Shown here piece by piece: positions 10,396 through 63,906 of a stretch of 64,000 nt of DNA. Position 1 is the first letter of the stretch. Every line of letters starts with the position of its first letter. The notes beneath the pieces were generated by a model. The model was not told the DNA's origin and made no database searches. It worked only from the letters and a program-made list of their open reading frames with translations. The translations under genes and the position numbers were made by a program. The stretch spans positions 181,277 to 245,276 of IMG/VR virus record IMGVR_UViG_3300017971_000001, one strand, 5' to 3'.

Positions 10396-10809
10396 CTAGC
10401 GATTCAGCCGCTCGAAGAGCTCGTCCGGATCATTGAGAACTCGTTCTGCGGACTCGTAGGGGCTGAGGATATCGAGGTCTCCGTCCCATTGGGACTGGGC
10501 CAGCAGGACCTTGCCCAGCATGAGGTCGAAGGACTCGACCTCCCACCCCAGTTCCTCTTCAACGACTTCCCAGGGAGCGTCCTGCATTTCCTCGCCGGCG
10601 TAGTCCTTGAAAAAAGTGTTGACGTGGTCCAGCCAGTCCTGGGGATTCTCTCCACCCCAGACCTGGAGCTCTCCCCCCGCGTCACGGTAGTTAACCAGCA
10701 GGCGAGGCCTGAGGTCGAACTGAGCAAGGAACTCAAGCAGGAGACCTGGTTCGTTGCGTAGGATCGCGCTAGCGCGACTCAGGATCTCGTCAGGACTCAT
10801 GCGGCTCAC
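10396..10809 (-). CDS. Acidic hypothetical protein
   Basis: GTGA coupling to the upstream gene. Confidence 0.7.
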   Translation of the reverse strand: MSRMSPDEILSRASAILRNEPGLLLEFLAQFDLRPRLLVNYRDAGGELQVWGGENPQDWLDHVNTFFKDYAGEEMQDAPWEVVEEELGWEVESFDLMLGKVLLAQSQWDGDLDILSPYESAERVLNDPDELFERLNR

Positions 10810-11696
10810 AGGCCCAGCCTTCCCAGCGCGCCTTCGACGCTTGCGCGCAGCTTCTCTCGCTGCTGTTCGAGTTCATTCGCGGCTCGCTCGAGCGCTTGTT
10901 GCTTGCGCTCCAGAATGTCGAGCTCGCGCGAAATGTTGGTCGTGCTGATTTCCTTCTGAGCGACCTGCATGGCGGCGGGGTGTTCAGCGACCCAGTCGGA
11001 AATGAATTCGGCGAGCGGCTCTTCGATTATGTCCCGAATTCGATTTTCAAGGTCTCGAGCTCGAGGGGGCCGGCGGCCGTGGAATTCGACCGAGAGCCCT
11101 CGCTCCATTCCGTAGAGCCCACCGAGGTATTCGACGGATCCGTCTGGGTGGACGACGAGCGCCGCCTTGCCGAACGCCTCCCAGAACTTTCCGCGGCCGC
11201 GACGCGCGCCGAGGGGCTCCCCGCGAGGGCATATGCTGTAGCTGAACGACGCCTTGCGAATCACCTGCCCTTGCCGTCCGGAGAGCGAAGAGTTGACCGG
11301 AAGCGACTCGACCACAGGAGGGTCGACGTGATCGATTCCGGCAGAGACTTCCGTTTGCTCTTCGTAGGGGTCTCGTTCGTACTTGGTGCCCGCGTTGTAG
11401 AGAGCGAGGTTGCCGACCTGAACGTAGACCACGTCGCTCGTGACGGGAACAATGCAGAGCCCTGGAGAGGGCCCTTCCGGGTTCCATTCGTAGTCGATCG
11501 GGTAGGACTGCAAAGCGTTGATCGTGACGTTGGGCTTTCCCCAGTAGCCCGTCATGTAGCTTGGCATTTCTCCTTCGACGTCGCCGCGGCGAATGAGTTC
11601 GTGTGCCAGCGCTTCAGCGGCCGCTGCGTCTCCGGCGCGGACCATGCGCGCCATGTCGCGGAGTCGCTCGTCGCTGGGGTTGTGTCGATAGCTCAT
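10806..11696 (-). CDS. NP-tagged module protein with C-terminal coiled coil
   Basis: MSYRHNPSDERLRDMARMVRAGDAAAAEAL. Confidence 0.78.
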   Translation of the reverse strand: MSYRHNPSDERLRDMARMVRAGDAAAAEALAHELIRRGDVEGEMPSYMTGYWGKPNVTINALQSYPIDYEWNPEGPSPGLCIVPVTSDVVYVQVGNLALYNAGTKYERDPYEEQTEVSAGIDHVDPPVVESLPVNSSLSGRQGQVIRKASFSYSICPRGEPLGARRGRGKFWEAFGKAALVVHPDGSVEYLGGLYGMERGLSVEFHGRRPPRARDLENRIRDIIEEPLAEFISDWVAEHPAAMQVAQKEISTTNISRELDILERKQQALERAANELEQQREKLRASVEGALGRLGL

Positions 11697-11920: not shown

Positions 11921-12366
11921 TGGATCTCCGGGTGTTCGTTGTCCCACCATTGGACCTGGAATTCCCAGTCGTCGTAGACCAACTCGTCGTCGAGGTCGTA
12001 GGGGAAGCTATTGAAGTCAATGTCCCCGTGTCTTTCAACGTACTCTTTCGCGAATCTGAGCACTTCGCGAGCCTCTCTGGACGAGAAGCCGCCGATCGTG
12101 TTGGCGTAAGCGTAGTCGACGACCTGATAGGCGCGCCCTCCGTCCCAGGACTCGATCTCCTCGATCTCGAAGCGGCCGTCCGGAGGCCGGAAACCTCGCC
12201 GCTCGCGGTAGTCGGGCGGAAGGTAAACGATTCGGCTGCGAACCTGGTGCGCCTTGTCCCATTCGTCCTGACGTTCGAGTTCGAGCGCATACGCTTCTCC
12301 GAGCTCGCGCGATCGATCGCCGGCGAGCCATTGGCGCTCCAAGTTACGCAGGCGCTTGTCGCTCAA
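11917..12366 (-). CDS. Module protein (SDKRLRNLERQWLAGD)
   Basis: TTG start at 12366 overlapping the upstream TGA; acidic C-terminus. Confidence 0.7.
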   Translation of the reverse strand: MSDKRLRNLERQWLAGDRSRELGEAYALELERQDEWDKAHQVRSRIVYLPPDYRERRGFRPPDGRFEIEEIESWDGGRAYQVVDYAYANTIGGFSSREAREVLRFAKEYVERHGDIDFNSFPYDLDDELVYDDWEFQVQWWDNEHPEIQ

Positions 12367-14051
12367 AACAACGAGTCCCCGAGATCGTGCCCTTCCTTCC
12401 AGGCCTGGCGCATGCCTCCCGCGGGCGCCTCGGCAACGATCTCGAGCGTTTCGAGGAGCCCGTCCCGACTCTTGCGCTGAACGCGGATTTCGTCCAGCCA
12501 CTCGAGTTCGAGCCAGGGAAGCGGGATCGGCATGTCGATTTCTACTCGGTCGCCGCTCGGCTCAGGCATGTAGACGCTCCGCGTTACCGGGTCTTCGATT
12601 CGGAAGACGCCGAGCGTGACTTGGTGCTCGTCCGGGCGGACCTGAGAGAGGTCCGGTGCCATTCCTGGCAGTGGGCGAAGGGAGTCGTAGTGACTCGAGC
12701 CAGCGTATCCGTTGGGGAAGACGAAGCGCAGCGTCTCCAGAACGAGATCGCCGGCGCGTGGAATGGGGTGGGACCCCCATGCGCCCCTGCGCTCCATAGC
12801 CGCCATGCCCATGCGGAAACTTCCGGGGGCGAGGTACTCACGAATGGCGAGATCGGGCTCAGGGATCATGCCCTTGCGCACGTCGATCAGGTTCTGCAGC
12901 GCCTTCTCGCGCAGGGCGGCGGGCAGCTGGTCGAAGACGGGCGCGAACTGCGTCGTCAGTCGAGTCAGGCGCTCGATCGCGTCCGGGTCACCTGCCGCGG
13001 CCGCGCGCTCGAGCTCGCGAAGTCGGCGGTCGCCTCGCTCGGGATTGCGTCGCTTGCGACGCCGGCGGCGGAGCGGGTTGTTGCTGTAGGCGTGCTTCTT
13101 GCACTTCTTCTTGTACTTCTCCAGGCGAGCGCACATGGGGCACTCGGCGGGGGTCATGGAGGTAATCTCTCTTCGCTTCGGAGGGAGCGCGCCGGGTCCG
13201 ACGCTCCCGCGACTCTCTCCAAGCCACGCCAGCAGCAACCGCTCCATGACCTCCATGACCTGGTTGACCGAGAGGCCGATCGACGTGCCTCCGAAGCAGG
13301 GCGGGAAATGAACTCCTCCGCAGACTCCGCATTCGTGGTTTGGGTCGAAATATTCGACGTCTACGTCGAGTGGATCAAAGTCTTCGTCGAATCGATCTTC
13401 CTCGAACTCTTCAATGCTGACTTCGTCAATCTTGTTGGCCATGATCAAAGCGGCCCAAACCAGGAGATCGTAAGGCCCGATCGAGACGTAGTAGTGAGGA
13501 GGGATTTCCTGATAGGGCTCGTCCTCGCTGGAAGCGATCTGGATCAGAAGATCGGCCTGCTGGATCACGCCCTCAAAGCTGTTCGCCATGTTGAAGACGT
13601 TTGCGCGGCTCAGCCCTCGACCTGAGAGATAGTGCCGCCCCCAGTCGCTGTCGAGGATCGTAGGAATGACGAGCTCGACGTCCGAGATCGTGTGAAGCTC
13701 GATCATGGGGAGTTCGAACAGGGTCTTGCACCACTGGTTGAATTCTCGATTTCCCCAGGCTGGGTCATGGTCGAAATCGTAAAGCGCTCCTACGGTCCCC
13801 ATGCGGTCAGAGCTCTGAAGCGAGCGGACGGCACTGCGCACGAATTCGATCAGTCGGGCGCCGCCTGCGTCCTGCCCGGCGAGCTCGGCGAGGCTATGAC
13901 TACGGTTCGTTCTTGGGGTCCTGCCCGCGGCGGCGAGGAGTCGCTCGTATTCTTCCTGAGCTTCAGGGTCCCCCAGCGCTGCCGCCCGGCGCACGCGCTC
14001 GATCCGCTCGTCCAGACCTGCATTGCGCCGGTATCCGTAATAGCGCCTCAC
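12363..14051 (-). CDS. Two-module protein with an internal RRNP junction
   Basis: N-terminal RRNAGLDERIERVRRAAALGDPEA and internal RRNPERGDRRLRELERAAAAGDPDA; two CxxC pairs before the junction. Confidence 0.8.
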   Translation of the reverse strand: MRRYYGYRRNAGLDERIERVRRAAALGDPEAQEEYERLLAAAGRTPRTNRSHSLAELAGQDAGGARLIEFVRSAVRSLQSSDRMGTVGALYDFDHDPAWGNREFNQWCKTLFELPMIELHTISDVELVIPTILDSDWGRHYLSGRGLSRANVFNMANSFEGVIQQADLLIQIASSEDEPYQEIPPHYYVSIGPYDLLVWAALIMANKIDEVSIEEFEEDRFDEDFDPLDVDVEYFDPNHECGVCGGVHFPPCFGGTSIGLSVNQVMEVMERLLLAWLGESRGSVGPGALPPKRREITSMTPAECPMCARLEKYKKKCKKHAYSNNPLRRRRRKRRNPERGDRRLRELERAAAAGDPDAIERLTRLTTQFAPVFDQLPAALREKALQNLIDVRKGMIPEPDLAIREYLAPGSFRMGMAAMERRGAWGSHPIPRAGDLVLETLRFVFPNGYAGSSHYDSLRPLPGMAPDLSQVRPDEHQVTLGVFRIEDPVTRSVYMPEPSGDRVEIDMPIPLPWLELEWLDEIRVQRKSRDGLLETLEIVAEAPAGGMRQAWKEGHDLGDSLF

Positions 14052-14885: not shown

Positions 14886-15030
14886 GGTCGTCCTTGGGTT
14901 CGTCGTGAATGAAGGATTGGCAGGAAGGGCACCACAGCAACCACAATCGGGACCCGCTCTCCTTCTCCCAAGCTGGCTTGAGCTCGGGCTTGAATCCGCA
15001 GGCGTCGCAGGGCTCGAAAAGGGGGATCAT
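14872..15030 (-). CDS. 52 aa zinc-ribbon protein (below the ORF-track cutoff)
   Basis: MIPLFEPCDACG..WCPSCQSF; ATGA overlap with the 15027 stop. Confidence 0.65.
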   Translation of the reverse strand: MIPLFEPCDACGFKPELKPAWEKESGSRLWLLWCPSCQSFIHDEPKDDHEQS

Positions 15031-16904
15031 TCTGACTGCGGCCCTAGGAGCTCGAGCGCGATCCGCCGCTTCTCCCTCCCAAGCGGAGACAGCGCGCTTG
15101 CGCCTGCGCTCTCACGAAGGAAGTAGAGGTCGTTGCTCGAGTAGCTTCCCTCACGATCTCCGTAGCGAGCGATCAGGTCTTGATCCCAGCTTCGCGCGCC
15201 CTTGTCCATGCCGGGGTAGTGGTAGAAGTCGTAGAACGACCTCCAGATCCTCCCTGTGAAGCGTTCCTGCTCGGCGGGGTAGTAGGACGTGTGTAGATAC
15301 GTGTAGGCCGGATCTGCGAACTGGTGCGGGCTCCAGAAGGGACCGGGCACGCGATCTCCTTCCTCCAAGATTCCGCGCCGCAGGAGCTCGTCCACGTAGT
15401 GCCGGCGGTCCTCGATCGATCCTGTTTGAGCCGCGCGCTCGAGCTCGCGCAGGCGCTCGTCACCTTTGTTGGGATTTTCGCGCGCCCGTCGGACGACCTG
15501 AATGTTCTTCCAGGGAATCGTGCCCAGGTAGATCGAGGCGACTCCGCCGCATTCGTAGTCGTCGACGTAGCGCTTGCCGTATTTCTTGGCCCCCTCGATC
15601 AGCCAGGCGTCTCCCTCGGGCGTGCCGAAGACGCTCCGGACGTCGAAGTATTCTTCAGGCGCGACGCCGAGGACCCAGTAGCGCTCGTAGGGGTCCATGA
15701 GGTTGTAGTCGGGGACGAGCAGGTCGGGGTCGGGCACCTCGACGCCGAGAAGTCGTCTCGTTTTTGGGTCGGTTGAGTAGTGGCCTCCCCAGCACCAACT
15801 TTCAGAGGTTTCGCTGCCAAGGAATGGATAGACCAGTCCTCGCTCGCGGATCTTGGGAAGCTTCCACTTGGTCGTGCCGTGGTAGTAGTCGAACTCCTCG
15901 AAATCGTCGATCGGATTCTTCCTCGGGCGTCGGTATCCCCGCGGCGGCCAGGTCCCAATGAAGGTCCTGAGTCCAGCTTCAGAGTCGTCCAGCGCTATTT
16001 CGAGATCCATGCCGCTTCCGCGCTCAATGAAGTCAGGGATCTCTCGCAAGGAACCGGCGGAGATCTGGAGGCGGTGATCCTCGGGGTCGAGCTCGAGGAC
16101 CTGGTCCGCCTGCCTGTTCATTCGCTTGCGGATCACGGCGATCGCGTAGGGCGTGAGCGTTCTGCTTTGATTGAGTTCGAAGATCGTGTCCAGGAAGTCC
16201 CGGTTGAGACGAACCTCCTCCAGGAGCTCCTGCGCCTGAAAGGCGTGAAAGTCGGAGCGGGCGGGATTGTTTTGCACGCTCGCGGTGATCCCGAAGTGCT
16301 CCTGCTCAGTTGGGCTGTAGATCCGATACCTTCCGCAGTGGGGGCCGTATCGCTTCCCGCGCAAGCCGACGACCTCCACGCAGGTCTTGTAGTCCAGCGG
16401 CTCCATGAACAGCAGGTCGACGATCCCGATCGGATACCAGGGCGCCGGGTTCGGCCAGTCGAGCATGTAGGTGCGGTTCTCTAGGTAGCGCAGCAGGTCC
16501 TCGTGCGTGTCGACGGTATGGAACCAGAGTTCGTCGTATGAATGAACGACGCCGCGCTCAACGATCAGGAACCGTCCCGAGAGCGCGCTGCGCATGTCCG
16601 TGTTTTCGGGGTCGAAGGCGTCCCGAAAATCGTTCTGGCTGAACTCTGTCGCCCATTCGAGATAGGGAGGCGCGGTTCCGTCCCTGATTTGATCGATCAG
16701 GGTGTAAGCGCGAACGCTGTAGTTGGACTTCTCCCCGACTGCCAGGCGCGCGTAGTGCAGCATGTCCCGCGCCTCATGGTCGCCCTCCTGAGATCGCCTC
16801 TCGAGCTCGCCGTTGCGGTAGAGTTCGATCAAGAGTTCGTCGTAGGCGTCCCGGTCGCCTTCGGCTGCGAGTCGCTCAAGCCTGCGAATCCTCGGGTCGC
16901 TCAT
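15027..16904 (-). CDS. NP-segmented multi-module protein containing an ADP-ribosyltransferase-like domain
   Basis: Starts MSDPRIRRLERLAAEGD; after RKNP comes YYHGTTKWKLPKIRERGL..SIYLGTIPWKNI; after RENP a second GDERLRELERAA module. Confidence 0.78.
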   Translation of the reverse strand: MSDPRIRRLERLAAEGDRDAYDELLIELYRNGELERRSQEGDHEARDMLHYARLAVGEKSNYSVRAYTLIDQIRDGTAPPYLEWATEFSQNDFRDAFDPENTDMRSALSGRFLIVERGVVHSYDELWFHTVDTHEDLLRYLENRTYMLDWPNPAPWYPIGIVDLLFMEPLDYKTCVEVVGLRGKRYGPHCGRYRIYSPTEQEHFGITASVQNNPARSDFHAFQAQELLEEVRLNRDFLDTIFELNQSRTLTPYAIAVIRKRMNRQADQVLELDPEDHRLQISAGSLREIPDFIERGSGMDLEIALDDSEAGLRTFIGTWPPRGYRRPRKNPIDDFEEFDYYHGTTKWKLPKIRERGLVYPFLGSETSESWCWGGHYSTDPKTRRLLGVEVPDPDLLVPDYNLMDPYERYWVLGVAPEEYFDVRSVFGTPEGDAWLIEGAKKYGKRYVDDYECGGVASIYLGTIPWKNIQVVRRARENPNKGDERLRELERAAQTGSIEDRRHYVDELLRRGILEEGDRVPGPFWSPHQFADPAYTYLHTSYYPAEQERFTGRIWRSFYDFYHYPGMDKGARSWDQDLIARYGDREGSYSSNDLYFLRESAGASALSPLGREKRRIALELLGPQSE

Positions 16905-17380
16905 GCGTAGTCGAGCTCCGTCACGGGCCAGCTTGCGTAGCACGCATTGCAGCTGATCCAGTCAGCCGGCCCTGCGTCGTCCGCGCTCTCGAACAGGCCA
17001 GTGACGTAGAGCACTCCGTCTTCGGCCTCACCCGCTTCTGCGAAGCGTAGTTCGTAGCTGCAGAGGCTGAAGCCCGCGCCTTCGATCTCGTGACCGCGGG
17101 GGCACTCGGTCACACTCTTGTGATTAGGGAACCAGCCAGCATGCGGCTCACCTCGCTGCTGCCAGGGTCGCGTGGCGTTGGCGAGCAGTAGATTCCGAGC
17201 TATGCGGGAGCAGACTTCAGGGGGCAGGGCGCCCTGCAGCCAGCGAATGTTCGCCTCGTCAGCCATGAACTCGGGGGTGAGGGCTCCTGTCCGCAGGAGC
17301 TCTTGGTACAGAAGGGGTCCTGCCTCGGGGTCGCCCTCGGCCACCCGGCGCTCCAGTTCTCGTAAGCGTCGATCGCTCAT
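16901..17380 (-). CDS. Module protein with C-terminal zinc ribbon (paralog A)
   Basis: MSDRRLRELERRVAEGDPEA; CPRGH..CNACYASWP. Confidence 0.8.
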   Translation of the reverse strand: MSDRRLRELERRVAEGDPEAGPLLYQELLRTGALTPEFMADEANIRWLQGALPPEVCSRIARNLLLANATRPWQQRGEPHAGWFPNHKSVTECPRGHEIEGAGFSLCSYELRFAEAGEAEDGVLYVTGLFESADDAGPADWISCNACYASWPVTELDYA

Positions 17381-17868
17381 ATGTCCCACTCAATCTCGAT
17401 CTGATTGATCGGCCACGAGGCGTAGCAAGTTCGGCAGGTTAGGTGGTCTGTGAGCGAAGTCGATTCGCCAATGATTCGATCGGAGCCCACGCTGACGTAT
17501 TCGCCGTCGTCGTCAGTGACCGTGTCCGTTGCAAACGAAGTTGCTTCGTAGGCGTCCAGTGTGAACGTGTGAAGCTGGTGCGAGTGCCCCCGCGGGCACG
17601 TGAGCGGACTGTGGTGATCTGGGAACCAGCCCCCAAGATTCTCCCCCTCAAAGAGCATGGTCGAGACTGCCAGAAGCGCCGTTTCTGCGATTTGTCCCAG
17701 GAGTTCGGCGGGCATTGCAGCTTGGAGCAGTCGGACGTTGTTGTGATCCGCAATGAATTCCGGCGTGATCATTCCAGCGCGAGCGAGCTCTTGGTACAGG
17801 AGGAGCCCGGCCTCGGGGTCGCCCTCGGCCACCCGTCGCTCCAGTTCTCGTAAGCGTCGATCGCTCAT
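17377..17868 (-). CDS. Module protein with C-terminal zinc ribbon (paralog B)
   Basis: Same N-terminus; CPRGH..CRTCYASWP; 5' 60 nt nearly identical to paralog A. Confidence 0.8.
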   Translation of the reverse strand: MSDRRLRELERRVAEGDPEAGLLLYQELARAGMITPEFIADHNNVRLLQAAMPAELLGQIAETALLAVSTMLFEGENLGGWFPDHHSPLTCPRGHSHQLHTFTLDAYEATSFATDTVTDDDGEYVSVGSDRIIGESTSLTDHLTCRTCYASWPINQIEIEWDI

Positions 17869-21448: not shown

Positions 21449-21706
21449 CTATTCGTCCTCGTCCCAGTCAGACCCGTTCCAGGGCAGGCAGCCGTCTTCG
21501 ATCAGGCTGACAACGATCATGCAGAACAGCATGGGTAGAAACGCGACGACGGTGTAGAAGGCCAGCAGGGCGTTGATCCAGAACCCGCCCTCCTGGCCTC
21601 TCCAGTAGATCTCACGATAGACGTCGTGCATGGCGGACCCGGCCAGCCAGCAAACGAACCAGGCCGCTTCAACGAATCCGGTAAGGAGTGTTCGCAGCAG
21701 GTCCAC
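21449..21706 (-). CDS. Small two-helix membrane protein
   Basis: Two hydrophobic stretches and an acidic tail; overlaps the end of the upstream ORF. Confidence 0.5.
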   Translation of the reverse strand: MDLLRTLLTGFVEAAWFVCWLAGSAMHDVYREIYWRGQEGGFWINALLAFYTVVAFLPMLFCMIVVSLIEDGCLPWNGSDWDEDE

Positions 21707-23219
21707 CGGGCCTCCAGGGTGACGTCGGGTCGAACAGGATCCAATCGACAGCGGGTTTGGTCAGCGTGTAGAGGAAGTCTTCGTAGAACGGATCGTAGGG
21801 CCTGCGCCGGCTCGGGCCGATCATGAGCGCGTGGTCGAGCGCAAGCGGCAGTCGATCCGCAGGCCAGCCGTACGACCAGCCGAGGCAGTTCCCCTCATAT
21901 TCGTTCGAGATTCCGGCGCCGATCGCGTAGAGGAGCTCGCGCATGGCTTCAAAAGCCGCGCCGCGGACAGGGTTGATATGAAGGGAGTGGAGCTCTCGGA
22001 GTTGCTGCTGCCAGCGACTTCTGCGCTGTTCTGCAAGTCCTGGCACATGCCTGTTGAAGTTTGTCCACCCCCAGAACACCTCGGAGCGCCTGGGCCATTC
22101 TTCGTCAACAACGGGAATGAGCTCGAGCAACTCCTCGACGCGATCGCAGATTTTCCCTGAGAGCTTGTAGTAATCAGGGTCGTCGTGGGGCGTGGCGAGA
22201 AGCTCTGCGTATTCTTCTCCGATCGTAGAGAGCTCGACTGGCAGGTAGCGGCGGATCGCGCGCGCCAGGCCGACGATCAGGTTGCGAGTGATTCGCCCGG
22301 ACCCATGCATGCCGCCGAGGTCTTTGTTGTTGGTGAGGGTGCTCAGGAAGCTTCTCAGCGACTTGCCGCCCATGTTCAGACGCCAAGCACCGTAGGTCTG
22401 CGGTGTCTCTTCGGCGGCAGCAGGAAAGAGCAGCGCGTGCGCAGCTGCGTATCCCATGGGCGAGATCTCGCCAGCGCGCAGGAGGTTGAGTAGGTGTGCC
22501 TGCTCTTCTTCGATCGTCTCGAACGAGCGCTCGAGCTTTCGCGCTGGTTCGTCGGGGTTCGATCGCACGCGCGGTCCTGCGGTGCCGAGAATGTAGCGAG
22601 CGAGAAGCTGCCGCTGCGCCGCGCGGACGCGCTCCCTCAGGCCATGGTCGATTGTCTGGGCAGTGTCAATGTGGTAGGCCGCGCCCTGCTGGGATCTCAT
22701 GGTGCGGAGCACAGCGGCGGGACTACCTTCTCGCTCGACCGCCTCCACGGCTTCGATAATGGTGTAGATCGCGAGTCGCCCTCGCAGGTCGTAACCCGGA
22801 AGCTGGGTCCATGAGCCCTGGAGTTCCTCAGCAGACGCCAGCAGTGCTTTTCTGAGGCATTCCAGCGACCCGTTCTCCGCGTATTCGCGCATGATCTTGA
22901 TCGCCTTGAAGATCTTGTTCGCGAACGCCCCGACGTGATCCTCGAACATTTCCAGAGTGGACTCGGCGATATCGGCGACGTAGGAGGCTCTTTGCTGGGG
23001 CGCTAGCAGGTCCCCGACCGCACGCTGAATGTCGTAATCCCTAAAGAGGGCCGTCGCGAACGTGTTCGGTTCTTCGATCTCGGCCGCGGCGGGGTGGCCC
23101 AGCAAGGCTGCGACGCGCAAGCGGCGCTCGCTCAGGTCCCCGGCGCGCAAGCGAAGCAAGAGCGCCTCGGCCGAGTCGGGATCGAGTTCGCGCAGTCGCT
23201 CTCGAAGCCGCCGGTCCAC
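21669..23219 (-). CDS. Two-module protein with internal RSNP junction; Imm5-like helical domain
   Basis: LLLRLRAGDLSERRLRVAALLGHPAA and, after VRSNP, LLNLLRAGEISPMGYAAAHALL. Confidence 0.75.
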   Translation of the reverse strand: MDRRLRERLRELDPDSAEALLLRLRAGDLSERRLRVAALLGHPAAAEIEEPNTFATALFRDYDIQRAVGDLLAPQQRASYVADIAESTLEMFEDHVGAFANKIFKAIKIMREYAENGSLECLRKALLASAEELQGSWTQLPGYDLRGRLAIYTIIEAVEAVEREGSPAAVLRTMRSQQGAAYHIDTAQTIDHGLRERVRAAQRQLLARYILGTAGPRVRSNPDEPARKLERSFETIEEEQAHLLNLLRAGEISPMGYAAAHALLFPAAAEETPQTYGAWRLNMGGKSLRSFLSTLTNNKDLGGMHGSGRITRNLIVGLARAIRRYLPVELSTIGEEYAELLATPHDDPDYYKLSGKICDRVEELLELIPVVDEEWPRRSEVFWGWTNFNRHVPGLAEQRRSRWQQQLRELHSLHINPVRGAAFEAMRELLYAIGAGISNEYEGNCLGWSYGWPADRLPLALDHALMIGPSRRRPYDPFYEDFLYTLTKPAVDWILFDPTSPWRPGGPAANTPYRIR

Positions 23220-30932: not shown

Positions 30933-31340
30933 ATGGCGAAGGACGACGTCAACGATCCGGGCCAGAAGTTCCTGCGCGACTTCTTGAGCCAACTCATGGC
31001 GCTGCAGCGAACGAATCAAGAGCTCGTCCAGGTCATGCTGAAGACGTATCAGCAGCAGCAGCAGATCCTGACCCAGCAGGCGAGCCTCACCCAGCAGATC
31101 GGGAATATGACGGCTCACCTGGACGGCCTGAGCCAGCGCGCGGACTACCTCTACGAGCGCATGGGCGAGCTCGGCTCGATCTTGATCGACGAGCAGCAGC
31201 CCCAGAGCCAGACGTATTACCCGACCCAGCCGACGCACTACGCTCCGAACCCGATCGAGCAGATCGGCGGCGCTGTCGCGAACACGCTTTTCGGTGCCGG
31301 GGCGACGCAGCGACGCAGTGGCAGGCGCCGGAGGCGCTGA
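30933..31340 (+). CDS. Gln-rich coiled-coil protein with Arg tail
   Basis: GGAG RBS; ends GRRRRR. Confidence 0.72.
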   Translation: MAKDDVNDPGQKFLRDFLSQLMALQRTNQELVQVMLKTYQQQQQILTQQASLTQQIGNMTAHLDGLSQRADYLYERMGELGSILIDEQQPQSQTYYPTQPTHYAPNPIEQIGGAVANTLFGAGATQRRSGRRRRR

Positions 31341-31399
31341 TAGGCTGAAAGCAAGTCTCGACTTGCGCACTTTTTAGTGCAAAGCCTGCGGAGCCTTTT

Positions 31400-32176
31400 G
31401 TGCTGCTGCCAATCCGTCAAATCAACGTGACGCCCGAGGGGATTCCGATCCTCGCCGGCAGCGCCTCGCCTGAGACAAAGCGTCCCCCGGCTGCGATCCG
31501 CCGAATCCGTTCCGCGGTCCCAGCCAACCCTACTATTGCGCCCATGCGCCCGACGCCCCCGATCGTGTCCATGCACGGCGCAGGCGCTCCCTACGGAAAA
31601 ACGTGGGGCCCTCCTGTCAAATACGTGCGGATCCCTGGCGGAGAGCAAGGGACCGTTGCCACGCTCAAGGTCATGAAGCAGGTCGTGCTCGGGCCCTGGG
31701 GGCACAGGAACCCCGAGGTCGTCGAACTCGCGCGTATGATCACGGACGGAGCCAGCCCCGGACCTGAGAAGAACTACCGCGAAATGGCGGGCCGGATCCT
31801 CGAGTTCATGAAGACGCACGTCGACTACCGACTCGACCCGTCCGGCCTCGAGTACGTTCCGACGCCTTGGTACACCTTGCTCGTCTCGGGCAAGGAAGAC
31901 TGCGACGGCCACAGCGTTGCGACAGCCGCCCTGGCCATGGCGCTGGGCATGAAGGCCGCCTTCCGTACCGTCAAGGGCGACCCGAATCGAAAAGATCAGT
32001 GGAGCCACGTTTACCCCGTAATCGGGTTCGTCGAACGCGGCAAGACTGTCTGGCTGACTGCGGACAGCACGCAGGCAGAAAGCTACCTGGGGTGGGATCC
32101 CCCGCAAGAAAAGCTCTTCGGAATGAAGACGTGGGTGATCACGCCCAGTATGGAGGACCGAGAATGGGAGGCCTGA
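31400..32176 (+). CDS. Transglutaminase-like cysteine protease (candidate maturation protease)
   Basis: GKEDCDGHS (Cys), WSHVYP (His), WLTADST (Asp) in transglutaminase-like order. Confidence 0.82.
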   Translation: MLLPIRQINVTPEGIPILAGSASPETKRPPAAIRRIRSAVPANPTIAPMRPTPPIVSMHGAGAPYGKTWGPPVKYVRIPGGEQGTVATLKVMKQVVLGPWGHRNPEVVELARMITDGASPGPEKNYREMAGRILEFMKTHVDYRLDPSGLEYVPTPWYTLLVSGKEDCDGHSVATAALAMALGMKAAFRTVKGDPNRKDQWSHVYPVIGFVERGKTVWLTADSTQAESYLGWDPPQEKLFGMKTWVITPSMEDREWEA

Positions 32177-34080
32177 TTTTGGGTGGGCGCGGAAGTCGCC
32201 CCCCGCGGAAGCCGGCGCGCGTTCGTCGCGCTGGACTGGGCGGCCTCGGAGCCGGCCCCTGGGACAACTTCAACGCCGCTCAGTTCACCGAGCGCTGCAA
32301 TCCTGGACTCAAGAGTCAGGCGGGCGGCAACGCTCAGCAGATCATGGCCGCGTTCAGCGCTGCAGACGCTGCTCTGACCCGAGCCGAGCGCGACCTCACG
32401 CTCGCCAGCGATCGCCTCTCGACGGTCGGCTTCGATCCCGTCGCTGACTTCGAGGCGGCGCAGCTGGAAGACGACCTCGGCTTCGCGATCGATCAGGTCA
32501 GCGATCTTCGCCGTGACCTGGGCGCGACGTTCGACGACTTCAGCAACAGCATGCGTTCTGCGTTTGACAGCAACTTCTGCCCGCTCGTCCCTGGCGCCGG
32601 GATCGCGCAGGCGGACCAGTTCCTGCCCGCGATCAAGCGAATCCAGGCCGCGGCCTCCGCTTTGACGGGTGACCTCAAGGCGCGCGTCGCTTCGACGGAG
32701 CGCGCGATCGTCGCTCGAATCGATCGCGAGAACCGCGAGCGTGCCGCGGCTGAGGCGGCCCAGCTTGCTGCTGAGCAACGGGCAATCCGCGAGGCTGAGG
32801 AGGCCCGCCGGCTTGCCGAGCTCGAGGCCGAGCGTGAGCGCCTGCGCCTGGAGGCGGAGGAGCGCGAGCGTCAGCGCGAGTACGATCTTCAGCAACAGGC
32901 CCTCGAAGAGCAGCGACTTCGCGAGCAGCGCGAGGCCGAGGCGATCGCGCGTGAAGAGCAGTATCGGCGCGAGGTCGAGGAGCGGAGGCTTGAGGCCGAG
33001 GAGCGTGCTCGGCAAATGGAGCTCGACCGAATCCGCATGGCGGAGGAGGCCGAGGAGCGCCGGCGTCAGCTGGAACTCGAGGCCGAGCAGCGCCGCGAGG
33101 CCATGGAGCAGGAGCGCATTCTCCGAGAGGAGCAGCGTCGACTGCGCGCTGAGGAGCGCGAGGCCGAGCTCGAGCGCCTGACGCTCATGCAGGAACTCGC
33201 CGCCAGCGGACTCCCCCTTCCCGTTGCCACTCCGGCGACCGGGCCGGCGACGTCGTTCGCCTACCCCGGCGCGGCCGCGGCGCAGCTTCCCGCTTCGATC
33301 TATGGCCAGCAGCTTCCTGCTGGTTTCACCACTCCGCCCGGGTTCCAGTCCCCGGCGCTCTCCCCTGGCGCCCCGCAGATCACGGCGTATCCCGGTGCGC
33401 CCGGCGCCGCTCCGGTTCAGCAGCAGATTCAGCCGTTCCAGCAGAGCGCTCCGCTGCCGTTTCAGCAGAGCGCCCCGCTGCAGCCTGCGCCCACGGCCCC
33501 GCCGCCGGCGCCTGGGTTCCAGTGGGCGTCGTTCGATCCGGCAGGCGAGCTCTTCGGTATGGGGCCGATCGCCACTTCGGCCAAGCTGCGCGGAGGCATG
33601 ATCGAGGAGGGCTTCAAGGTCTACGGACCGAATGCTCAGGGCGACTACACCTTCTTCAACCCCGACGGCCAGCGGATCTCCGTCAAGACCATGGCGGGCC
33701 GGACGACCAACCTCGTCACTGAGGACGAGGTCATGGCCGGTCCGATCATGCACGAAGTGGACGGTCAGCAGCGCGTGATCTACAGCCCGCCCGCCGAGGG
33801 TGGCTCGAGCGACGATAGCGCTGCGATCGCTTCGGCGATCGCCCAGATCGTTTCGGCGGGCGCTCAGGCGACCGGGAACGTGCTGGTCGCGCGTGAGCAG
33901 CGCAAGGCCGCGGAAAGGTCTTCCGACGGGTTCCAGATTCCTGGCTACCCCTCGCTCACGATCCGTCAGGAGGGCCCGCAGGGCCTGAACCCCCTGGTCG
34001 TCATTGGCGGCCTGGCGGTCGCTGCCTTGGGAACGTTCGCGGTGATCAAGGTCGCCACGCGCGGCAAGGACGAGGAGTAG
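32164..34080 (+). CDS. Large coiled-coil, tail-anchored virion protein
   Basis: ATG 32164 after GGAGG; RRAGLGGLG; long coiled coil; Pro/Gln linker; C-terminal TM helix then RGK. Confidence 0.82.
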   Translation: MGGLILGGRGSRPPRKPARVRRAGLGGLGAGPWDNFNAAQFTERCNPGLKSQAGGNAQQIMAAFSAADAALTRAERDLTLASDRLSTVGFDPVADFEAAQLEDDLGFAIDQVSDLRRDLGATFDDFSNSMRSAFDSNFCPLVPGAGIAQADQFLPAIKRIQAAASALTGDLKARVASTERAIVARIDRENRERAAAEAAQLAAEQRAIREAEEARRLAELEAERERLRLEAEERERQREYDLQQQALEEQRLREQREAEAIAREEQYRREVEERRLEAEERARQMELDRIRMAEEAEERRRQLELEAEQRREAMEQERILREEQRRLRAEEREAELERLTLMQELAASGLPLPVATPATGPATSFAYPGAAAAQLPASIYGQQLPAGFTTPPGFQSPALSPGAPQITAYPGAPGAAPVQQQIQPFQQSAPLPFQQSAPLQPAPTAPPPAPGFQWASFDPAGELFGMGPIATSAKLRGGMIEEGFKVYGPNAQGDYTFFNPDGQRISVKTMAGRTTNLVTEDEVMAGPIMHEVDGQQRVIYSPPAEGGSSDDSAAIASAIAQIVSAGAQATGNVLVAREQRKAAERSSDGFQIPGYPSLTIRQEGPQGLNPLVVIGGLAVAALGTFAVIKVATRGKDEE

Positions 34081-57932: not shown

Positions 57933-60509
57933 ATGGCTCAGGTTAGTCTTTTCACGCGCAGTGCGGGGCGCTCAAACCTGCGCGGGCTCGACGAGTCCGC
58001 AGATCAGGTTCTGGTAAGCCAGATCGAGGGCACGGAAGCCGCCCGCTCTTTGTGGGCGGACACGGCCGCGACGAGCGCCAACCTCGCGACCGGAACGAAC
58101 ATTACCGCGGTCCAACTGGGCGCCGCGGCCTCGACCGTCACGGTGCCTGGAAACCTGACGATCAACGGAACGACGACCACGGTCAACACGACCAACCTCA
58201 CGGTCACCGACGCGCTGATCTACGCCAACGACGGTGGCGCGGACCCCAGCTTTGCGGGTATCGCGTGGGACCAGGGCGCGGCGCTCGACGTGATCACGGT
58301 CTGGAACCCGACCAACAGCCGGATCGAGTTCGGTCGATTCAACACGGTCGGAGGAACGTCGGTCCCCGCAGCCGCTCTGACCACCCTGAGTGACGTTCGT
58401 GTCAACGACCTCTCTCTGGCAGGCACGGAGATCGCCGGCGATTCGGCCGTCACGGTTTCGGCCGCGACCGGATCGGTCACTCTCGACGCCGCTGCCGCCG
58501 GATCGGTCAACTTCGACGTCAACGGTACGACCTTTTGGCAGGTCACGTCCGGCGGTGACTTCACTGCTTTCACCGACGACCAGGACGACATTGGAACGCC
58601 GAGCGCCGGGCGCCCCGCCAACGTCTACGTGTCCAACAGCGCTGTGATCGGCGACGCGAACACAGTGACGGTCAACGGGACTTCGGTCTCGGCGAGTTCG
58701 GACCTTACGATCGAGTCGGATCAGACCACGGACTCGACGCTGACGATCCAGTCGGGTGACGCGATCGAGATCAGCGCCGGCCAGAACAGCGGAGCCGGTG
58801 ACGTCACCGTGTTCGGCGCTGGTCTCGGCACGTTCGGCGTGGGAAGCAACGCCTCCCTCTCGGACTTCATGCTGAGGATCGACAACAACAGCACCGTGAC
58901 CCTTGCCGCTGGCTCCGGCGCCGATCTCTCGCTCGGCTCGGGCGGAACGCAGTGGGTGATCGACAACGCCAACGGCGACCTCTACACGCCGGACAACGTC
59001 GATATCGGTGAGGCGACCCAGGCCAACAGCCCGGACAACATTTACGCCGCGACCAGCGTCACGGTCGGGACCACGGTCACGATCACGACCAACGCGGTGA
59101 CCGGCAGCGCCGGCCTAACGGTGGACACGGCCGCGGCCCTTAGTCTCGGAACGGCCACTGCGACGTCAATCACGATCGGCCGCTCGGGCGTTCTGACGGA
59201 CTTCCCCAGCGGTTCGTCCGTGGACTTCACGGGCGCCACTGTGACCGGCTTGGCGCTCGGGGCCAGTAGCTTGGCGGCGACGCTTGCGGTCGGTAACACC
59301 ACGGGCGGCAACGACATTATCTTCACCAGCGGAGACGTGATCCAGGGTGAAGACGCGGCGGCCGGCGGCAACCTGGCTCTGAATGGCGGCGATTCGTCGG
59401 CCAGTAACAACGCCGGCGGCGCAGTTTCCGTGATCGGCGGCGTGGGCAATGGTTCCGGGGCCGGTGGCGCGCTTACGCTTACCGGCGGCCTGGCTGGCGC
59501 CACGGGAGGCGGCGGCAACATTGTCATGTCCGGCGGCGCCGGAATCGCGGGTATCGGCGGCGCGGTCACGATCTTCGGTGGTCAGTCGGGAGGGGCGAAC
59601 CAAGGCGGAAACGTTATTGTCCGCGCCGGTGCTGCGGCAAACGCAGCCGGAGCTACGCCCGGAACGCTCACGCTCGACGGCGGCGACTCGAGCGGATCCA
59701 GTGGCGCGTCTGGCGGGAACGTCGTGATCACAGGTGGCGATAGCGGCGCTTTTTCCCAGTCCGGCGGAACTGTCTCGATCACGGGCGGCACCGGCTTGGT
59801 CACGGATAACGCCGGCGGCGCAGTCAGCGTCACGGGCGGTCCGGCGATTGGCGGCGACAACGCCGGCGGCGCGGTCTCTGTGACAGGCGGGTCGAGCACG
59901 GGCACGGTCAACGGAGCCGACGTCACGGTCGCCGGCGGTTCGGCTACGGGAACCGGCGTCGACGGTCGGGTGATCTTCACCTCGGGCGGGACGACTTACG
60001 GGCTCACTGCTTCGGGCGTCTCCGGCCCCGCGCTCACGACCACAGCCCAGACTGTGATCGAGGCGATCAACGAGGTCAACGCTAGCGCGGCGACCTTCAC
60101 CCAGACGTTCACCAACAACACGGGTTCGGCGATTCTCGAGGGCGAGGTTCTCGCTCCCAGTGCTACGACCGCAGGTGAGATCGTTCTGGGCGACGCCTCG
60201 TCCGACAACAACGCTTCGCTGGTCGTTGGCTTCGGACCTTCGGGCGGCATTGCTGACGGCGCCTCGGGCGGAGTCTTTAGCGTTCGCGGTCAGTTGGTCA
60301 CCGCTCGCTTCGACGCCTCGCTCACGCTGGCTGAGGGCGAGCTCGTCTTCCTCTCGGAGACTGCGGGCCGAATCACGAACGTGGTCCCGACGACCGTGAA
60401 CACCGTCGCGCAGCAGGTTGGCTGGATCACGGACACGCTCAGCTACGACGGCACGACCGACTTCCTGGCCCAGATCTTCTTCATGGACGGCCCTCGGCTC
60501 GTCAACTAG
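57933..60509 (+). CDS. Long Gly/Thr/Ser-rich spike or fibre protein
   Basis: Repeated GG(A/N/T)V.(I/V).GG units; cement-like C-terminal domain. Confidence 0.8.
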   Translation: MAQVSLFTRSAGRSNLRGLDESADQVLVSQIEGTEAARSLWADTAATSANLATGTNITAVQLGAAASTVTVPGNLTINGTTTTVNTTNLTVTDALIYANDGGADPSFAGIAWDQGAALDVITVWNPTNSRIEFGRFNTVGGTSVPAAALTTLSDVRVNDLSLAGTEIAGDSAVTVSAATGSVTLDAAAAGSVNFDVNGTTFWQVTSGGDFTAFTDDQDDIGTPSAGRPANVYVSNSAVIGDANTVTVNGTSVSASSDLTIESDQTTDSTLTIQSGDAIEISAGQNSGAGDVTVFGAGLGTFGVGSNASLSDFMLRIDNNSTVTLAAGSGADLSLGSGGTQWVIDNANGDLYTPDNVDIGEATQANSPDNIYAATSVTVGTTVTITTNAVTGSAGLTVDTAAALSLGTATATSITIGRSGVLTDFPSGSSVDFTGATVTGLALGASSLAATLAVGNTTGGNDIIFTSGDVIQGEDAAAGGNLALNGGDSSASNNAGGAVSVIGGVGNGSGAGGALTLTGGLAGATGGGGNIVMSGGAGIAGIGGAVTIFGGQSGGANQGGNVIVRAGAAANAAGATPGTLTLDGGDSSGSSGASGGNVVITGGDSGAFSQSGGTVSITGGTGLVTDNAGGAVSVTGGPAIGGDNAGGAVSVTGGSSTGTVNGADVTVAGGSATGTGVDGRVIFTSGGTTYGLTASGVSGPALTTTAQTVIEAINEVNASAATFTQTFTNNTGSAILEGEVLAPSATTAGEIVLGDASSDNNASLVVGFGPSGGIADGASGGVFSVRGQLVTARFDASLTLAEGELVFLSETAGRITNVVPTTVNTVAQQVGWITDTLSYDGTTDFLAQIFFMDGPRLVN

Positions 60510-61303: not shown

Positions 61304-62047
61304 GTGAGAGCATTCAATCTTCCATGTCCTCCGGACACGCCGCTGGGCCAAGAGATCCTCGCTCTCGCGCGCAGCGAGGATCCGCAAGACCGCGAGCGGT
61401 TGTTTCAACTGCTCGACGACGCGGGCGCCGAGATCGACGTGCCGGATCAAGGCGAGGTCGCGATCGGCGGCAGGTCGTGTGAATTCTCGTTCACGCACCA
61501 GGTCCTTGAGGTCGAGGGCGTTCTGGACGAAACCTTTTGCCGCGACGTGATCGAGCTCGCCGAATCCAAGGGCGTCTGGAGTGACAGCACGCAAGTCCGG
61601 GGCGGCGGTCCGGTCTACCAGGACGAAAATCGCACCAGCCAGTATCAGCGCTTGCGCGATATCTGCTTTCCTGACTACGCCGACCACTTGCAGCAAAGGC
61701 TGATCGAGGTCGCCAAGTTCTACCAGGCTCGCAACAAGTACCTTGTGTTCAAGGAGCAGGAGATCAGCTGGGAGCTCCTGCGCTACCAGCCCGGCGACAA
61801 GTTCGAGACGCACGTCGACATGATCGCCAACAGCAGCTGGAAGGCGCGGACGCTGACCTTGCTCGCCTACCTGAACGACGACTTCAGCGGAGGGGAGACG
61901 GAGTTCGTCAAGCCGGGCCCTGAGGTGACCGTCCAACCGAAGCGCGGGAAGGCGATCGCCAGCCCGCCGTTCTGGACACACCCGCACCGAGGCTGCCCGC
62001 CGACCAGCGGCAGTAAATACGTCGTCCTTGGGTGGCTGTACGCATGA
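61304..62047 (+). CDS. 2OG-Fe(II) oxygenase (prolyl 4-hydroxylase-like)
   Basis: RYQPGDKFETHVD, YLNDDFSGGETEF, THPHRG, GSKY. Confidence 0.88.
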   Translation: MRAFNLPCPPDTPLGQEILALARSEDPQDRERLFQLLDDAGAEIDVPDQGEVAIGGRSCEFSFTHQVLEVEGVLDETFCRDVIELAESKGVWSDSTQVRGGGPVYQDENRTSQYQRLRDICFPDYADHLQQRLIEVAKFYQARNKYLVFKEQEISWELLRYQPGDKFETHVDMIANSSWKARTLTLLAYLNDDFSGGETEFVKPGPEVTVQPKRGKAIASPPFWTHPHRGCPPTSGSKYVVLGWLYA

Positions 62048-63906
62048 GTTATTGGAAAGCCTGGCTCGCACGTCGCGGCGTGTTCAACGTTCCCGACTCA
62101 GCGCTTCCGCCGGAGCCGCCGCGCGAGACCGTGCGCAGCAACCCGGCTGAGGAGGGAAGGACTTGGTACCTCGACGAAATGGGGGCCATGCCGAAGCTCA
62201 AGAAGCAGGCCAAGGGTCGCGGACGCCGCTTCCGACTCGAACCTCCCGAGGACGCGGTCGAGGCGGTCTATCAGTTCTTGGTTGAAGAAGCTTCGATCCG
62301 CCTCGCTGCGATCAACCGGCACGTCGCTTCAGGCGGGAGCGCCTGCCGAAAGGTCCATGGCGGCTTCCCCCGCTCCCGTGGATTCAAGTGTGTTTCCTTT
62401 TCGGTGGCCTCTGAAGACCGCTGCGGCGGCCGCCCGACGATCGCGAGCATGGCGCACGAATTTGGGGTTAGCCACAAGCGCGCTCGCATGTTCGTCTGCC
62501 AAGCCCAGACGAAGATCGTCAAGGAGGGATACGAATTGCCCCTCGAGGTCCCCGACGTGAGCAAGTTCCGAGCGCTCATTGCCCGAGAGCTCCTGCTCCC
62601 CAAGTACGCTTACTACTTCGCGAGCGGTTCTGCGTCCCCGGGTGAAATCGCAGGTGCTGCTGAGCTCGGCGATCGAATCGGCGCGGGCGTCACGGTCAAC
62701 AAGTGCCGAGAGGGGACCCAGTGCTTCGCCGGCGTCATGGATTTGATTTGGCGCAAGGGGGTCAAGGTTTTCGTTGACTCGGGTGCCTTCGAGGAGGTCG
62801 CGGCCAAGGGCGGAAAGCTCAAGGTCGTCTCACCGATCGACGACGAAGCCTGGGCCGAACGACTCGAGACCTACCTGAAGATCGCGCGTGTCTTCGGCGG
62901 CCGCGCTCACGTCGTCGCTCCAGACCGAGTCGGAAGTCAGAGCGACACGCTGGAGCGCCTCAAGGCGTATCGCGATCAAATGGCCCCCGTAATCGCGAAG
63001 GGGGCCAAGATCTTGGTGCCCGTGCAGCGCGGAAGCAAGTCCGCCTCCGCGTTCTATAAGCAGGCCAAGAAGGCGCTCGGCACGAAGGAGCCGCAGTGCA
63101 TGCCGGCCTTCCCCATGAAGAAGGGCGCCTACTCTCTTGAGGAGCTCCTCTCGTTTGTCCGCAAGGAGAAACCTCACGAAGTCCACTTGCTCGGCCTTGG
63201 CCCCGGCGGCAGCGCGCAGGCCAAGAAGTCTGGAAACAAGAAGGTGGACGCCAGCGAGGTGCTTAGGCGAGTTCACGAGGTCTCTCCGAGGACCAAGATC
63301 TACATGGACTCGGTCCTGGTTCGCTCCGGCGCCGGCCGCGGCTTCCTGAGCTTGAGCCCGAACGTCTACACGCAAGCTCAGGACGTCGTCCGATTCGAGC
63401 TCATTGACGAGGCATTCCAGAAAAGCTGGTTCGGCGGCCAGTCCATGGAGAACTGGATCAAGTGGGTTCAGGGTGAAGGCGGTTACTGGGGCGACGAGCC
63501 TGTGATCGATTACACCAACTGGATCTTCGAGGGGATTGATATTTGGTTCCCACAGGACTTCCGCGAACTCATTCCGAAGGAACTCAAGTTCTTGGGATAC
63601 ACAGGACTGCCGCCGAAGTCCCTTGCGGTCGAAAGTCCCTACGACTACTTGAGCAAGGTCGCCGAGGACTACGACCTCTGGGCCGACCAGTCGTTCAGCT
63701 TCTGGCTGGATCGGCACTTCGCCGCGTTCTTGGGGAGCCTTTACGCTGTGAGGCGCAAGCGTGACGCGATCCCGCTTGCCTGGCAGCAGCGCGACCTCGA
63801 AACCTTTCTTGCTGAACTCCCTTCGCTCGAGTCGGCGATCCCTTACGTCATGTTCCAGGACGAGCACGGGGAATCCGGCCCCTTCGTTATGAGGTTTGAA
63901 TCATGA
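62044..63906 (+). CDS. TGT/DpdA-like (base-exchange fold) protein with N-terminal RSNP and HTH
   Basis: VFVDSGAF, VAPDRVG, LVPVQRG, EVHLLGLG, IYMDS; TIASMAHEFGVSHKRAR HTH; ATGA overlap. Confidence 0.68.
   Translation: MSYWKAWLARRGVFNVPDSALPPEPPRETVRSNPAEEGRTWYLDEMGAMPKLKKQAKGRGRRFRLEPPEDAVEAVYQFLVEEASIRLAAINRHVASGGSACRKVHGGFPRSRGFKCVSFSVASEDRCGGRPTIASMAHEFGVSHKRARMFVCQAQTKIVKEGYELPLEVPDVSKFRALIARELLLPKYAYYFASGSASPGEIAGAAELGDRIGAGVTVNKCREGTQCFAGVMDLIWRKGVKVFVDSGAFEEVAAKGGKLKVVSPIDDEAWAERLETYLKIARVFGGRAHVVAPDRVGSQSDTLERLKAYRDQMAPVIAKGAKILVPVQRGSKSASAFYKQAKKALGTKEPQCMPAFPMKKGAYSLEELLSFVRKEKPHEVHLLGLGPGGSAQAKKSGNKKVDASEVLRRVHEVSPRTKIYMDSVLVRSGAGRGFLSLSPNVYTQAQDVVRFELIDEAFQKSWFGGQSMENWIKWVQGEGGYWGDEPVIDYTNWIFEGIDIWFPQDFRELIPKELKFLGYTGLPPKSLAVESPYDYLSKVAEDYDLWADQSFSFWLDRHFAAFLGSLYAVRRKRDAIPLAWQQRDLETFLAELPSLESAIPYVMFQDEHGESGPFVMRFES

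Follow-up and report, generated by a model that had tools for sequence, protein, structure and literature searches.

A stand-alone DpdA-like protein of a metagenomic jumbo phage, probably from an undescribed clade of DNA base-exchange enzymes

The closest described systems are the DpdA enzymes of the tRNA-guanine transglycosylase (TGT)/DpdA superfamily, whose members exchange guanine for 7-deazaguanine in DNA (DpdA) or tRNA (TGT). In the DpdA active site, Asp95 serves as general acid/base and Phe99 as a gate, Asp130 and His181 lie on the Watson-Crick edge of guanine, Leu236 is a further residue of the site, and Asp256 is the nucleophile; all three aspartates are invariant across TGTs and DpdAs (PMC10164549). 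Bacterial DpdA (Salmonella Montevideo, PDB 7UI4) also contains a CXCX2CX22H zinc site and the four-helix insertion Ins8, requires the DpdB ATPase and is encoded in an 11-gene dpd cluster (PMC10164549). Here we analyse P0001, a 620-amino-acid (aa) protein encoded near the end of a 64,000-nucleotide stretch of DNA (hereafter the window; positions 181,277 to 245,276 of IMG/VR virus record IMGVR_UViG_3300017971_000001). Its predicted fold and conserved residues suggest that P0001 is probably a DNA base-exchange enzyme from a new, undescribed DpdA-like clade.

An AlphaFold2 (AF2) model of residues 183-620, computed from an alignment of relatives, shows a (β/α)8 barrel of eight strand-helix units followed by a helical extension. 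The mean predicted local distance difference test (pLDDT) score is 73, rising to 87-95 over the central strands of the core. The extension (~100 residues) is common to most members of the family, and profile positions up to ~352 are matched family-wide. Structure searches with the model returned hundreds of TIM-barrel matches, headed by DpdA and including Cap10; in Foldseek, xylose-isomerase-like barrels ranked above TGT, so that the fold alone leaves the assignment undecided.

The conserved residues are more informative. The active sites of TIM barrels lie at the C-terminal ends of the strands, and this is where each invariant motif of the family is found in the prediction. Invariance was counted over an alignment of 60 sequences and over 160 aligned members. 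The essentially invariant motifs are S194-G195 after β1, F-x-D245-S-G-A-F249-x-E251 after β3, A-P-D294 after β4, P357-x-K-K after β6 and H381-L-L-G-x-G in β7. D245, which ends strand 242-245, is present in 159 of the 160 members, F249 in 153 and D294 in every one; Q328 is kept in 155 and replaced by His in four, and D422, at the end of strand 418-422, is again present in 159. The invariant set thus comprises three Asp, one Gln, one His and one Glu. Positions 245, 294, 328, 383 and 422 reproduce the order and spacing of the DpdA active site: D245 and F249 correspond to Asp95 and Phe99 of the Salmonella enzyme, D294 to Asp130, and D422 to Asp256, while the position of Q328 is His181 in DpdA and Gln in bacterial TGT. 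The nucleophile of Zymomonas mobilis TGT is Asp280.

To place the family, profiles were compared by HHalign with DpdA alignments that we built ourselves. Against the 9g-type DpdA alignment the probability was 78% (E 1.8e-5, 161 columns), with DSGAF, the β4 Asp, the Gln/His position, the β7 motif and the β8 DS all in register; the 9g-type counterparts are LDG at the β4 Asp, CFH at the β5 Gln/His and CDSSS at D422. Against a more diverse phage alignment, made from the annotated genes of 9g, BcepGomr, ZHS, Bipper, Dp-1, Qyrzula and phiFN37, it was 88% (E 3e-6, 174 columns, from β1 to β7). HHalign of the family with a single E. coli Tgt sequence gave no similarity. Among the PHROGs, P0001 had one weak match, phrog_887 'queuine tRNA-ribosyltransferase' (E 0.036, residues 208-317); over 38 genomes that hold the family, this profile matched the family gene alone in 7, with E-values of 5e-5 to 7e-3. 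In a language-model search the nearest entries were clusters carrying the DpdA family PF23859 (score 0.91, 196 of 256 features, 22 of 30 matches). Sequence searches of Pfam, NCBIfam and PADLOC with P0001 yielded nothing useful, and a search of PDB sequences yielded chance matches only; PDB matches of the family profile were limited to a designed TIM barrel and to the ScoMcrA head domain that some relatives have. TGT-barrel motifs had been noticed earlier from the sequence of the gene, and the AF2 barrel, the invariance across 160 members and the profile alignment with DpdA bear them out. The core very probably belongs to the TGT/DpdA superfamily, as a divergent member whose predicted catalytic set is intact. 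The automatic name of the nearest Atlas cluster, 'T4 beta protein', was rejected, as PF14350 is unmatched at E<=1 in the genome and in 37 related records.

The comparison with phage DpdA1 (Enterobacteria phage 9g gp03 and its relatives in Queuovirinae, mycobacteriophage cluster B and Dp-1) shows both kinship and distance. Like P0001, DpdA1 is phage-borne and has a TIM barrel with a core of ~300 aa. Both have F(L/V)DSGAFS after β3, an Asp after β4, H-G/L-x-G in β7 and a DS ending β8, and both lack a zinc-binding Cys cluster and are missed by the Pfam families PF01702 (TGT) and PF23859 (DpdA). However, the two share no similarity at the BLAST level: when three members of the family (P0001, P0008 and P0013) were searched by tblastn against 50,697 phage records, nothing matched. 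P0001 has Gln after β5 where DpdA1 has His, P-M-K-K-x-A-T at β6 where DpdA1 has LGG(M/L)VG, and a helical C-terminal extension of ~100 aa that DpdA1 lacks. DpdA1 genes lie in folE-queD-queE-queC clusters, whereas the P0001 gene does not. The zinc site, Ins8, DpdB dependence and dpd cluster of bacterial DpdA were not seen for P0001, and the Zn subdomain and tRNA-binding insertions of bacterial Tgt (Z. mobilis, E. coli) are likewise missing from it. DpdA3 (Cellulophaga phiST, Campylobacter phages) and DpdA4 (DUF6610, Halovirus HVTV-1) resemble the P0001 family in being very divergent TGT-superfamily members that were found by profile methods only (PMC10516641), and the BFVD structural matches of the family include a phiST protein. 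DpdA3 and DpdA4 were defined by linkage to deazaguanine genes and by measured DNA modification, whereas the P0001 family shows no such linkage outside one lineage, described below.

The family is large and metagenomic. A word search recovered 17 relatives sharing residues ~188-585, and a hidden Markov model (HMM) search of the full library returned 1149 cluster representatives at E<=1e-3 (clusters at 50% identity). Family loci are almost all on high-GC phage contigs; just 14 were found in 185,579 species genomes, mostly on contigs of metagenome-assembled genomes of Myxococcota, Acidobacteriota, Alphaproteobacteria and Actinomycetota. About one third of the IMG/VR copies lie inside open reading frames (ORFs) of 850-4100 aa, and the large representatives carry InPase, C5 DNA methylase, ddrB-ParB, helicase, GNAT and DUF3560 domains, while other members have an N-terminal ScoMcrA_N head domain or a PAPS-reductase domain. 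This is the architecture of polyvalent proteins, where relatives are embedded in proteins of 850-4271 aa with InPase, ddrB-ParB, C5 methylase, helicase, GNAT, ART or Mom-like domains and adjoin terminase, portal and MuF genes; the best BFVD match of the family is an 'ART-PolyVal' protein. P0001, by contrast, stands alone, with neither a polyvalent fusion nor a terminase, portal or MuF neighbour. The packaged enzyme of the original prediction therefore has indirect support at the level of the family only. The terms 'TGT' and 'TIM barrel' are absent from the polyvalent-protein paper of Iyer et al. (2017), which describes no such domain (PMC5512222).

A neighbourhood census was made for ~60 of the >1100 family clusters. 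The top-recurring neighbour clusters (terminase, portal, YqaJ, MuF, DNA polymerase, primase and methylase) each occur in at most 7 of ~50 loci, and no conserved partner gene emerged, as no neighbour cluster exceeded that number. SNF2, ParB and N6/N4 methylase genes are also neighbours in relatives. Mom (PF25680) was found in 6 of 37 records, as a neighbour in three, in the same ORF in two and in an adjacent ORF in one. The domains associated with the family are all predicted to act on DNA. As a separate observation, Mom-like domains were recorded in fusion with the DpdA-like domain, next to it or in its vicinity in L053 (8549-12082, 1177 aa), L015 (5396-12916, 2506 aa), L025, L033, L044 and L065. 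Where the two are fused, a single polyvalent protein unites two distinct folds for DNA base modification.

We propose that P0001 exchanges guanine in DNA for another base, a reading to which we give an even chance. The enzyme would flip guanine, or a guanine-like base, out of double-stranded DNA; D294 and Q328 would read its Watson-Crick edge, D245 would protonate the leaving base, and D422 would form a covalent (deoxy)ribosyl-enzyme intermediate, after which a second base would be installed by double displacement. The helix-turn-helix (HTH)-like N-terminal region and the helical C-terminal extension may grip the DNA or direct the enzyme to it. As the phage encodes no preQ0 pathway, the base brought in would be either a 7-deazaguanine made by the host (preQ0 or preQ1) or some other base. 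The likely role would be to protect phage DNA from restriction, with expression as one coupled unit together with a 2-oxoglutarate (2OG) oxygenase and a Lys-rich protein of DNA-binding type.

Several findings weigh against this proposal. P0001 lacks the structural zinc site CXCX2CX22H found in TGT and bacterial DpdA: Cys residues do not cluster after D422, nor do they in the family consensus. Phage DpdA1 has no such site either, so the zinc site does not define phage clades. The β6 loop reads P-M-K-K-x-A-T in place of the GG(L/M)xVG of TGT and DpdA1; with the loop altered, the pocket for the 7-substituent would differ, which would leave room for a different base. The HHalign probabilities stay below 90%, in comparisons made with DpdA only. 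PF01702 and PF23859 are unmatched across the genome even at E<=10, so the placement among TGT/DpdA families that the original prediction had sought by HMM came from profile-profile comparison and the weak phrog_887 match, not from these two models. This miss weighs little, because the proven 9g DpdA (L006 3007-3960, minus strand) escapes both models as well; HMM surveys with PF01702 and PF23859 will miss phage DpdA1 and the P0001 family alike. Every described DpdA clade (bDpdA and DpdA1-4) is found beside 7-deazaguanine synthesis genes (PMC10516641). The lack of folE, queD, queC and queE, first reported for the window, extends to the whole 245-kb genome, which has no QueC, QueD/PTPS, QueE, FolE, radical-SAM or canonical TGT gene, and of 14 family-bearing phage genomes that are near-complete, 13 are without QueC and none has QueD or FolE.

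A stand-alone enzyme drawing on a host pool is nevertheless feasible, since DpdA2, when expressed by itself in E. coli, places preQ0/preQ1 from the host into DNA (PMC10516641). QueC occurs in two of the 37 related records; QueE and QueC adjoin the family gene in L026 and L022 alone. In L026 (9956-14466; IMG/VR 3300029787_000023), the family gene is convergent with QueE (PDB 5tgs, 7e-13) and QueC (3bl5, 6e-9). L026 is a 70-kb phage, 97% complete, of which L022 is a fragment with the same arrangement. The L026 genome has no PF01702 or PF23859 gene and no QueD or FolE. Its family gene lies 2.4 kb from a Mom gene, and the 3' end of the ORF resembles part of Mom (phmmer 1.5e-8). L026 is the best natural test case for a 7-deazaguanine link of the family.

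In one alternative, P0001 retains the superfamily and its pocket but catalyses another reaction or uses another acceptor, as a hydrolytic N-glycosylase removing a base from host or modified DNA, an enzyme inserting a base other than a deazaguanine, or a protein or nucleotide enzyme for counter-defence resembling Cap10 of the type IV cyclic-oligonucleotide-based anti-phage signalling system (CBASS). A TGT-family enzyme is reported in a bioRxiv preprint (10.1101/2025.04.06.647259) to act on a protein, and Cap10 is among the structural matches. The absence of deazaguanine genes here and from 13 of 14 complete relatives favours this alternative, as does the replacement of the β6 loop, which reads the 7-substituent in TGT, by an invariant P-x-K-K, and the domains of polyvalent proteins usually serve as effectors that are injected to act against host systems (PMC5512222). 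Set against this, the guanine-reading β4 Asp and β5 Gln/His are invariant, one lineage pairs the family gene with QueE and QueC, and the fused domains are DNA binders or modifiers, not cGAS/DncV-like nucleotidyltransferases (CD-NTases); we regard it as unlikely, though to be taken seriously.

Less probable still is an unrelated TIM barrel (a sugar isomerase or epimerase, an aldolase or an Endo IV-like AP endonuclease) whose motifs resemble those of DpdA by chance, an alternative that the fold alone does not settle. The five motifs align strand for strand with DpdA at E-values of 3e-6 to 2e-5, phrog_887 singles out the family gene in 7 genomes, the language-model neighbours are DpdA clusters, and no sugar-metabolism context was seen around the family. 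The three-metal site of Endo IV is a His/Asp/Glu cluster, which the family's invariant set does not appear to match. A TGT acting on host or phage tRNA, or on the tRNA-like RNAs to which the original prediction had extended the substrate range, is very unlikely despite a TGT-like pocket with Gln after β5, as in bacterial TGT, and the presence of phage tRNAs, because none of the five tRNAs has a GUN anticodon, there is neither a Zn subdomain nor the set of insertions with which TGT grips the anticodon arm, RNA-binding domains (PUA or other) were not seen, and the domains associated with the relatives (ScoMcrA_N, C5 and N6/N4 methylases, ParB, SNF2, Mom) are all DNA-directed.

Returning to base exchange in DNA as the preferred reading, a broader version of it is tentative: the family may form a sixth, functionally distinct clade of DNA transglycosylases, often packaged and injected within polyvalent proteins and modifying incoming phage DNA or host DNA. 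Coupled to it, and held with equal reserve, is the suggestion that the base is other than the known phage-made 7-deazaguanines, with host preQ0/preQ1 used or a new base inserted or removed. If so, base exchange would be a far more widespread phage counter-defence than the que-linked DpdA clades suggest.

Literature searches found no paper describing the P0001 clade. What is new is a large, unannotated, apparently DpdA-like clade that is not tied to que genes and has been taken up into polyvalent proteins. Linkage to 7-deazaguanine genes led to the discovery of all five described DpdA clades, whereas this family keeps the predicted catalytic machinery without the linkage; it is absent from cultured-phage genomes (by tblastn) and from Pfam and NCBIfam, and it has repeatedly been recruited into injected polyvalent proteins and into anti-restriction neighbourhoods with Mom, methylase and helicase genes. 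Should its members exchange DNA bases, surveys based on que genes or on current HMMs make phage DNA hypermodification look rarer than it is, and the polyvalent-protein toolkit gains a testable enzyme. P0001 itself is a concrete DNA-modification candidate in high-GC jumbo phages known solely from metagenomic assemblies.

Table 1 Features of P0001 and its flanking genes (window coordinates unless stated otherwise; residues are those of P0001)
Feature	Position	Strand	Remarks
P0001 gene, 620 aa	ORF 62032/62044..63906	+	N-terminal lineage-specific region, DpdA-like TIM barrel, helical C-terminal extension
RSNP tetrapeptide, residues 31-34	62134-62145	+	bare tetrapeptide; RQNP in close homologue
Candidate helix-turn-helix, residues ~131-161	62434..62526	+	helices 133-140, 144-161; low-confidence AF2 model
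(β/α)8 barrel core, residues ~188-445	62605..63378	+	AF2 model
Predicted catalytic D245, DSGAF motif after β3	62776-62778	+	
Predicted catalytic D294, APD after β4	62923-62925	+	
Predicted catalytic Q328, after β5	63025-63027	+	
Predicted catalytic D422, end of β8	63307-63309	+	
Helical C-terminal extension, residues ~446-585, then lineage-specific tail to 620	63379..63798	+	helices pLDDT 63-79
2OG-Fe(II) oxygenase, 247 aa, upstream	61304..62047	+	PF13640 E 2.9e-15; phrog_61 E 2.3e-31
Lys-rich basic protein, 236 aa, downstream	63903..64000, across 123-bp terminal repeat to genome ~733	+	ATGA overlap

The source record is an IMG/VR virus of 245,276 bp, of which the window is the terminal stretch. 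It carries a 123-bp direct terminal repeat, is rated 100% complete by CheckV and has ~62% GC. The source is a jumbo phage known from metagenomes only; blastn with 7 kb of its DNA found no match among the 50,697 isolate phage records. Gene sets were obtained by heuristics based on GC content at the third codon position, giving 361 genes for the genome.

The P0001 gene is under clear constraint. Its ATG at 62044 and the stop codon (TGA) of the preceding gene overlap as ATGA, and a single close homologue, P0003 (93% identical; two Logan contigs), begins with the same residues, MSYWK; the overlap and the shared start residue led us to choose 62044 as the start. GC by codon position is 0.62/0.44/0.78, the pattern of real genes in this genome. 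Between the P0001 and P0003 genes there are 208 synonymous and 42 non-synonymous codon differences, of which the N-terminal 187 residues account for 71 and 17, respectively. P0001 is thus a constrained coding gene in which purifying selection reaches the N-terminal third.

ATGA overlaps at both ends of P0001 make the oxygenase, P0001 and the Lys-rich protein one translationally coupled unit. The Lys-rich protein has a KKKT/KKVA tract of ~90 residues that resembles histone H1 tails and precedes a globular C-terminal part, and its homologue in the close relative L010 occupies the same place. The oxygenase, a Mom-like domain elsewhere in the window and P0001 had been put forward together as candidate modification activities, P0001 being the third. 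The oxygenase is real and coupled to P0001, but it and the basic protein partner the DpdA-like family in a near-identical relative only, and the Mom-like partner is not supported by PF25680, the only means tried, which finds nothing in the genome at E<=0.1.

Residues 1-187 of P0001 (62044-62604) are found only in this phage and a close relative, and had been described as a short leader ending in an RSNP tag with a sigma-r4-like HTH. The tetrapeptide is there. In the proteome, R-x-N-P is enriched about 10-fold (RSNP, 8 observed against 0.7 expected; RRNP, 10 against 1.0), with RKNP over-represented to a similar degree. It opens a module of ~35 aa, RxNP-(x)DERLRxLERAAxxGDxxA...L..R, present in >20 phage proteins, mostly within residues 1-40 and sometimes internally. 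Examples in the window, all on the minus strand, are 10806-11696, 12363-14051, 15027-16943, 16901-17389, 17377-17868 and 21669-23219, and the module is doubled in the genome ORFs 138394-140637 and 31039-32862, also on the minus strand. This module is probably what was termed the 'RSNP tag'; it may be an N-terminal domain common to a paralogous family, a helix for docking or a processing site. P0001 does not appear to carry it: an HMM built from 10 copies in the genome and searched against the genome's proteins, where it matched >20 others, left P0001 unmatched even at E<=10. With RQNP in the homologue and no sign of cleavage, targeting or packaging found for the P0001 RSNP, the description as a leader or tag is not borne out.

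The HTH fared somewhat better. Helices 133-140 and 144-161 have HTH spacing, with pLDDT ~50-60 in an N-terminal model that was computed from two sequences and has a pLDDT of 47. HTH or winged-HTH proteins account for all ten of the closest Atlas structures (among them HTH_36, GntR, Sigma70_r4/HARE-HTH and ISL3 HTH), but their TM scores are just 0.33-0.42, the region has no Pfam match even at E<=10, and the language-model features of residues 60-175 gave no usable match. An HTH predicted from this model is plausible, whereas the sigma-r4-like label was not upheld. By analogy, the N-terminal region may be a DNA-binding accessory domain, which would fit the habit of the family, as ScoMcrA_N occupies the same position in other members.

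Two genes upstream of P0001, at 57933-60509 on the plus strand, the window encodes an 858-aa Gly/Ala/Thr/Ser-rich protein with long low-complexity repeats, which we would guess to be a tail fibre candidate; its location would place P0001 at the end of a late/structural block. The five phage tRNAs are those for Met, Thr, Glu, Gly and Leu. Outside the window, ARAGORN called a tmRNA (tag ADQKAHLPTATSRA) adjoining the tRNA-Gly, at genome positions 128149-128557 on the complementary strand.

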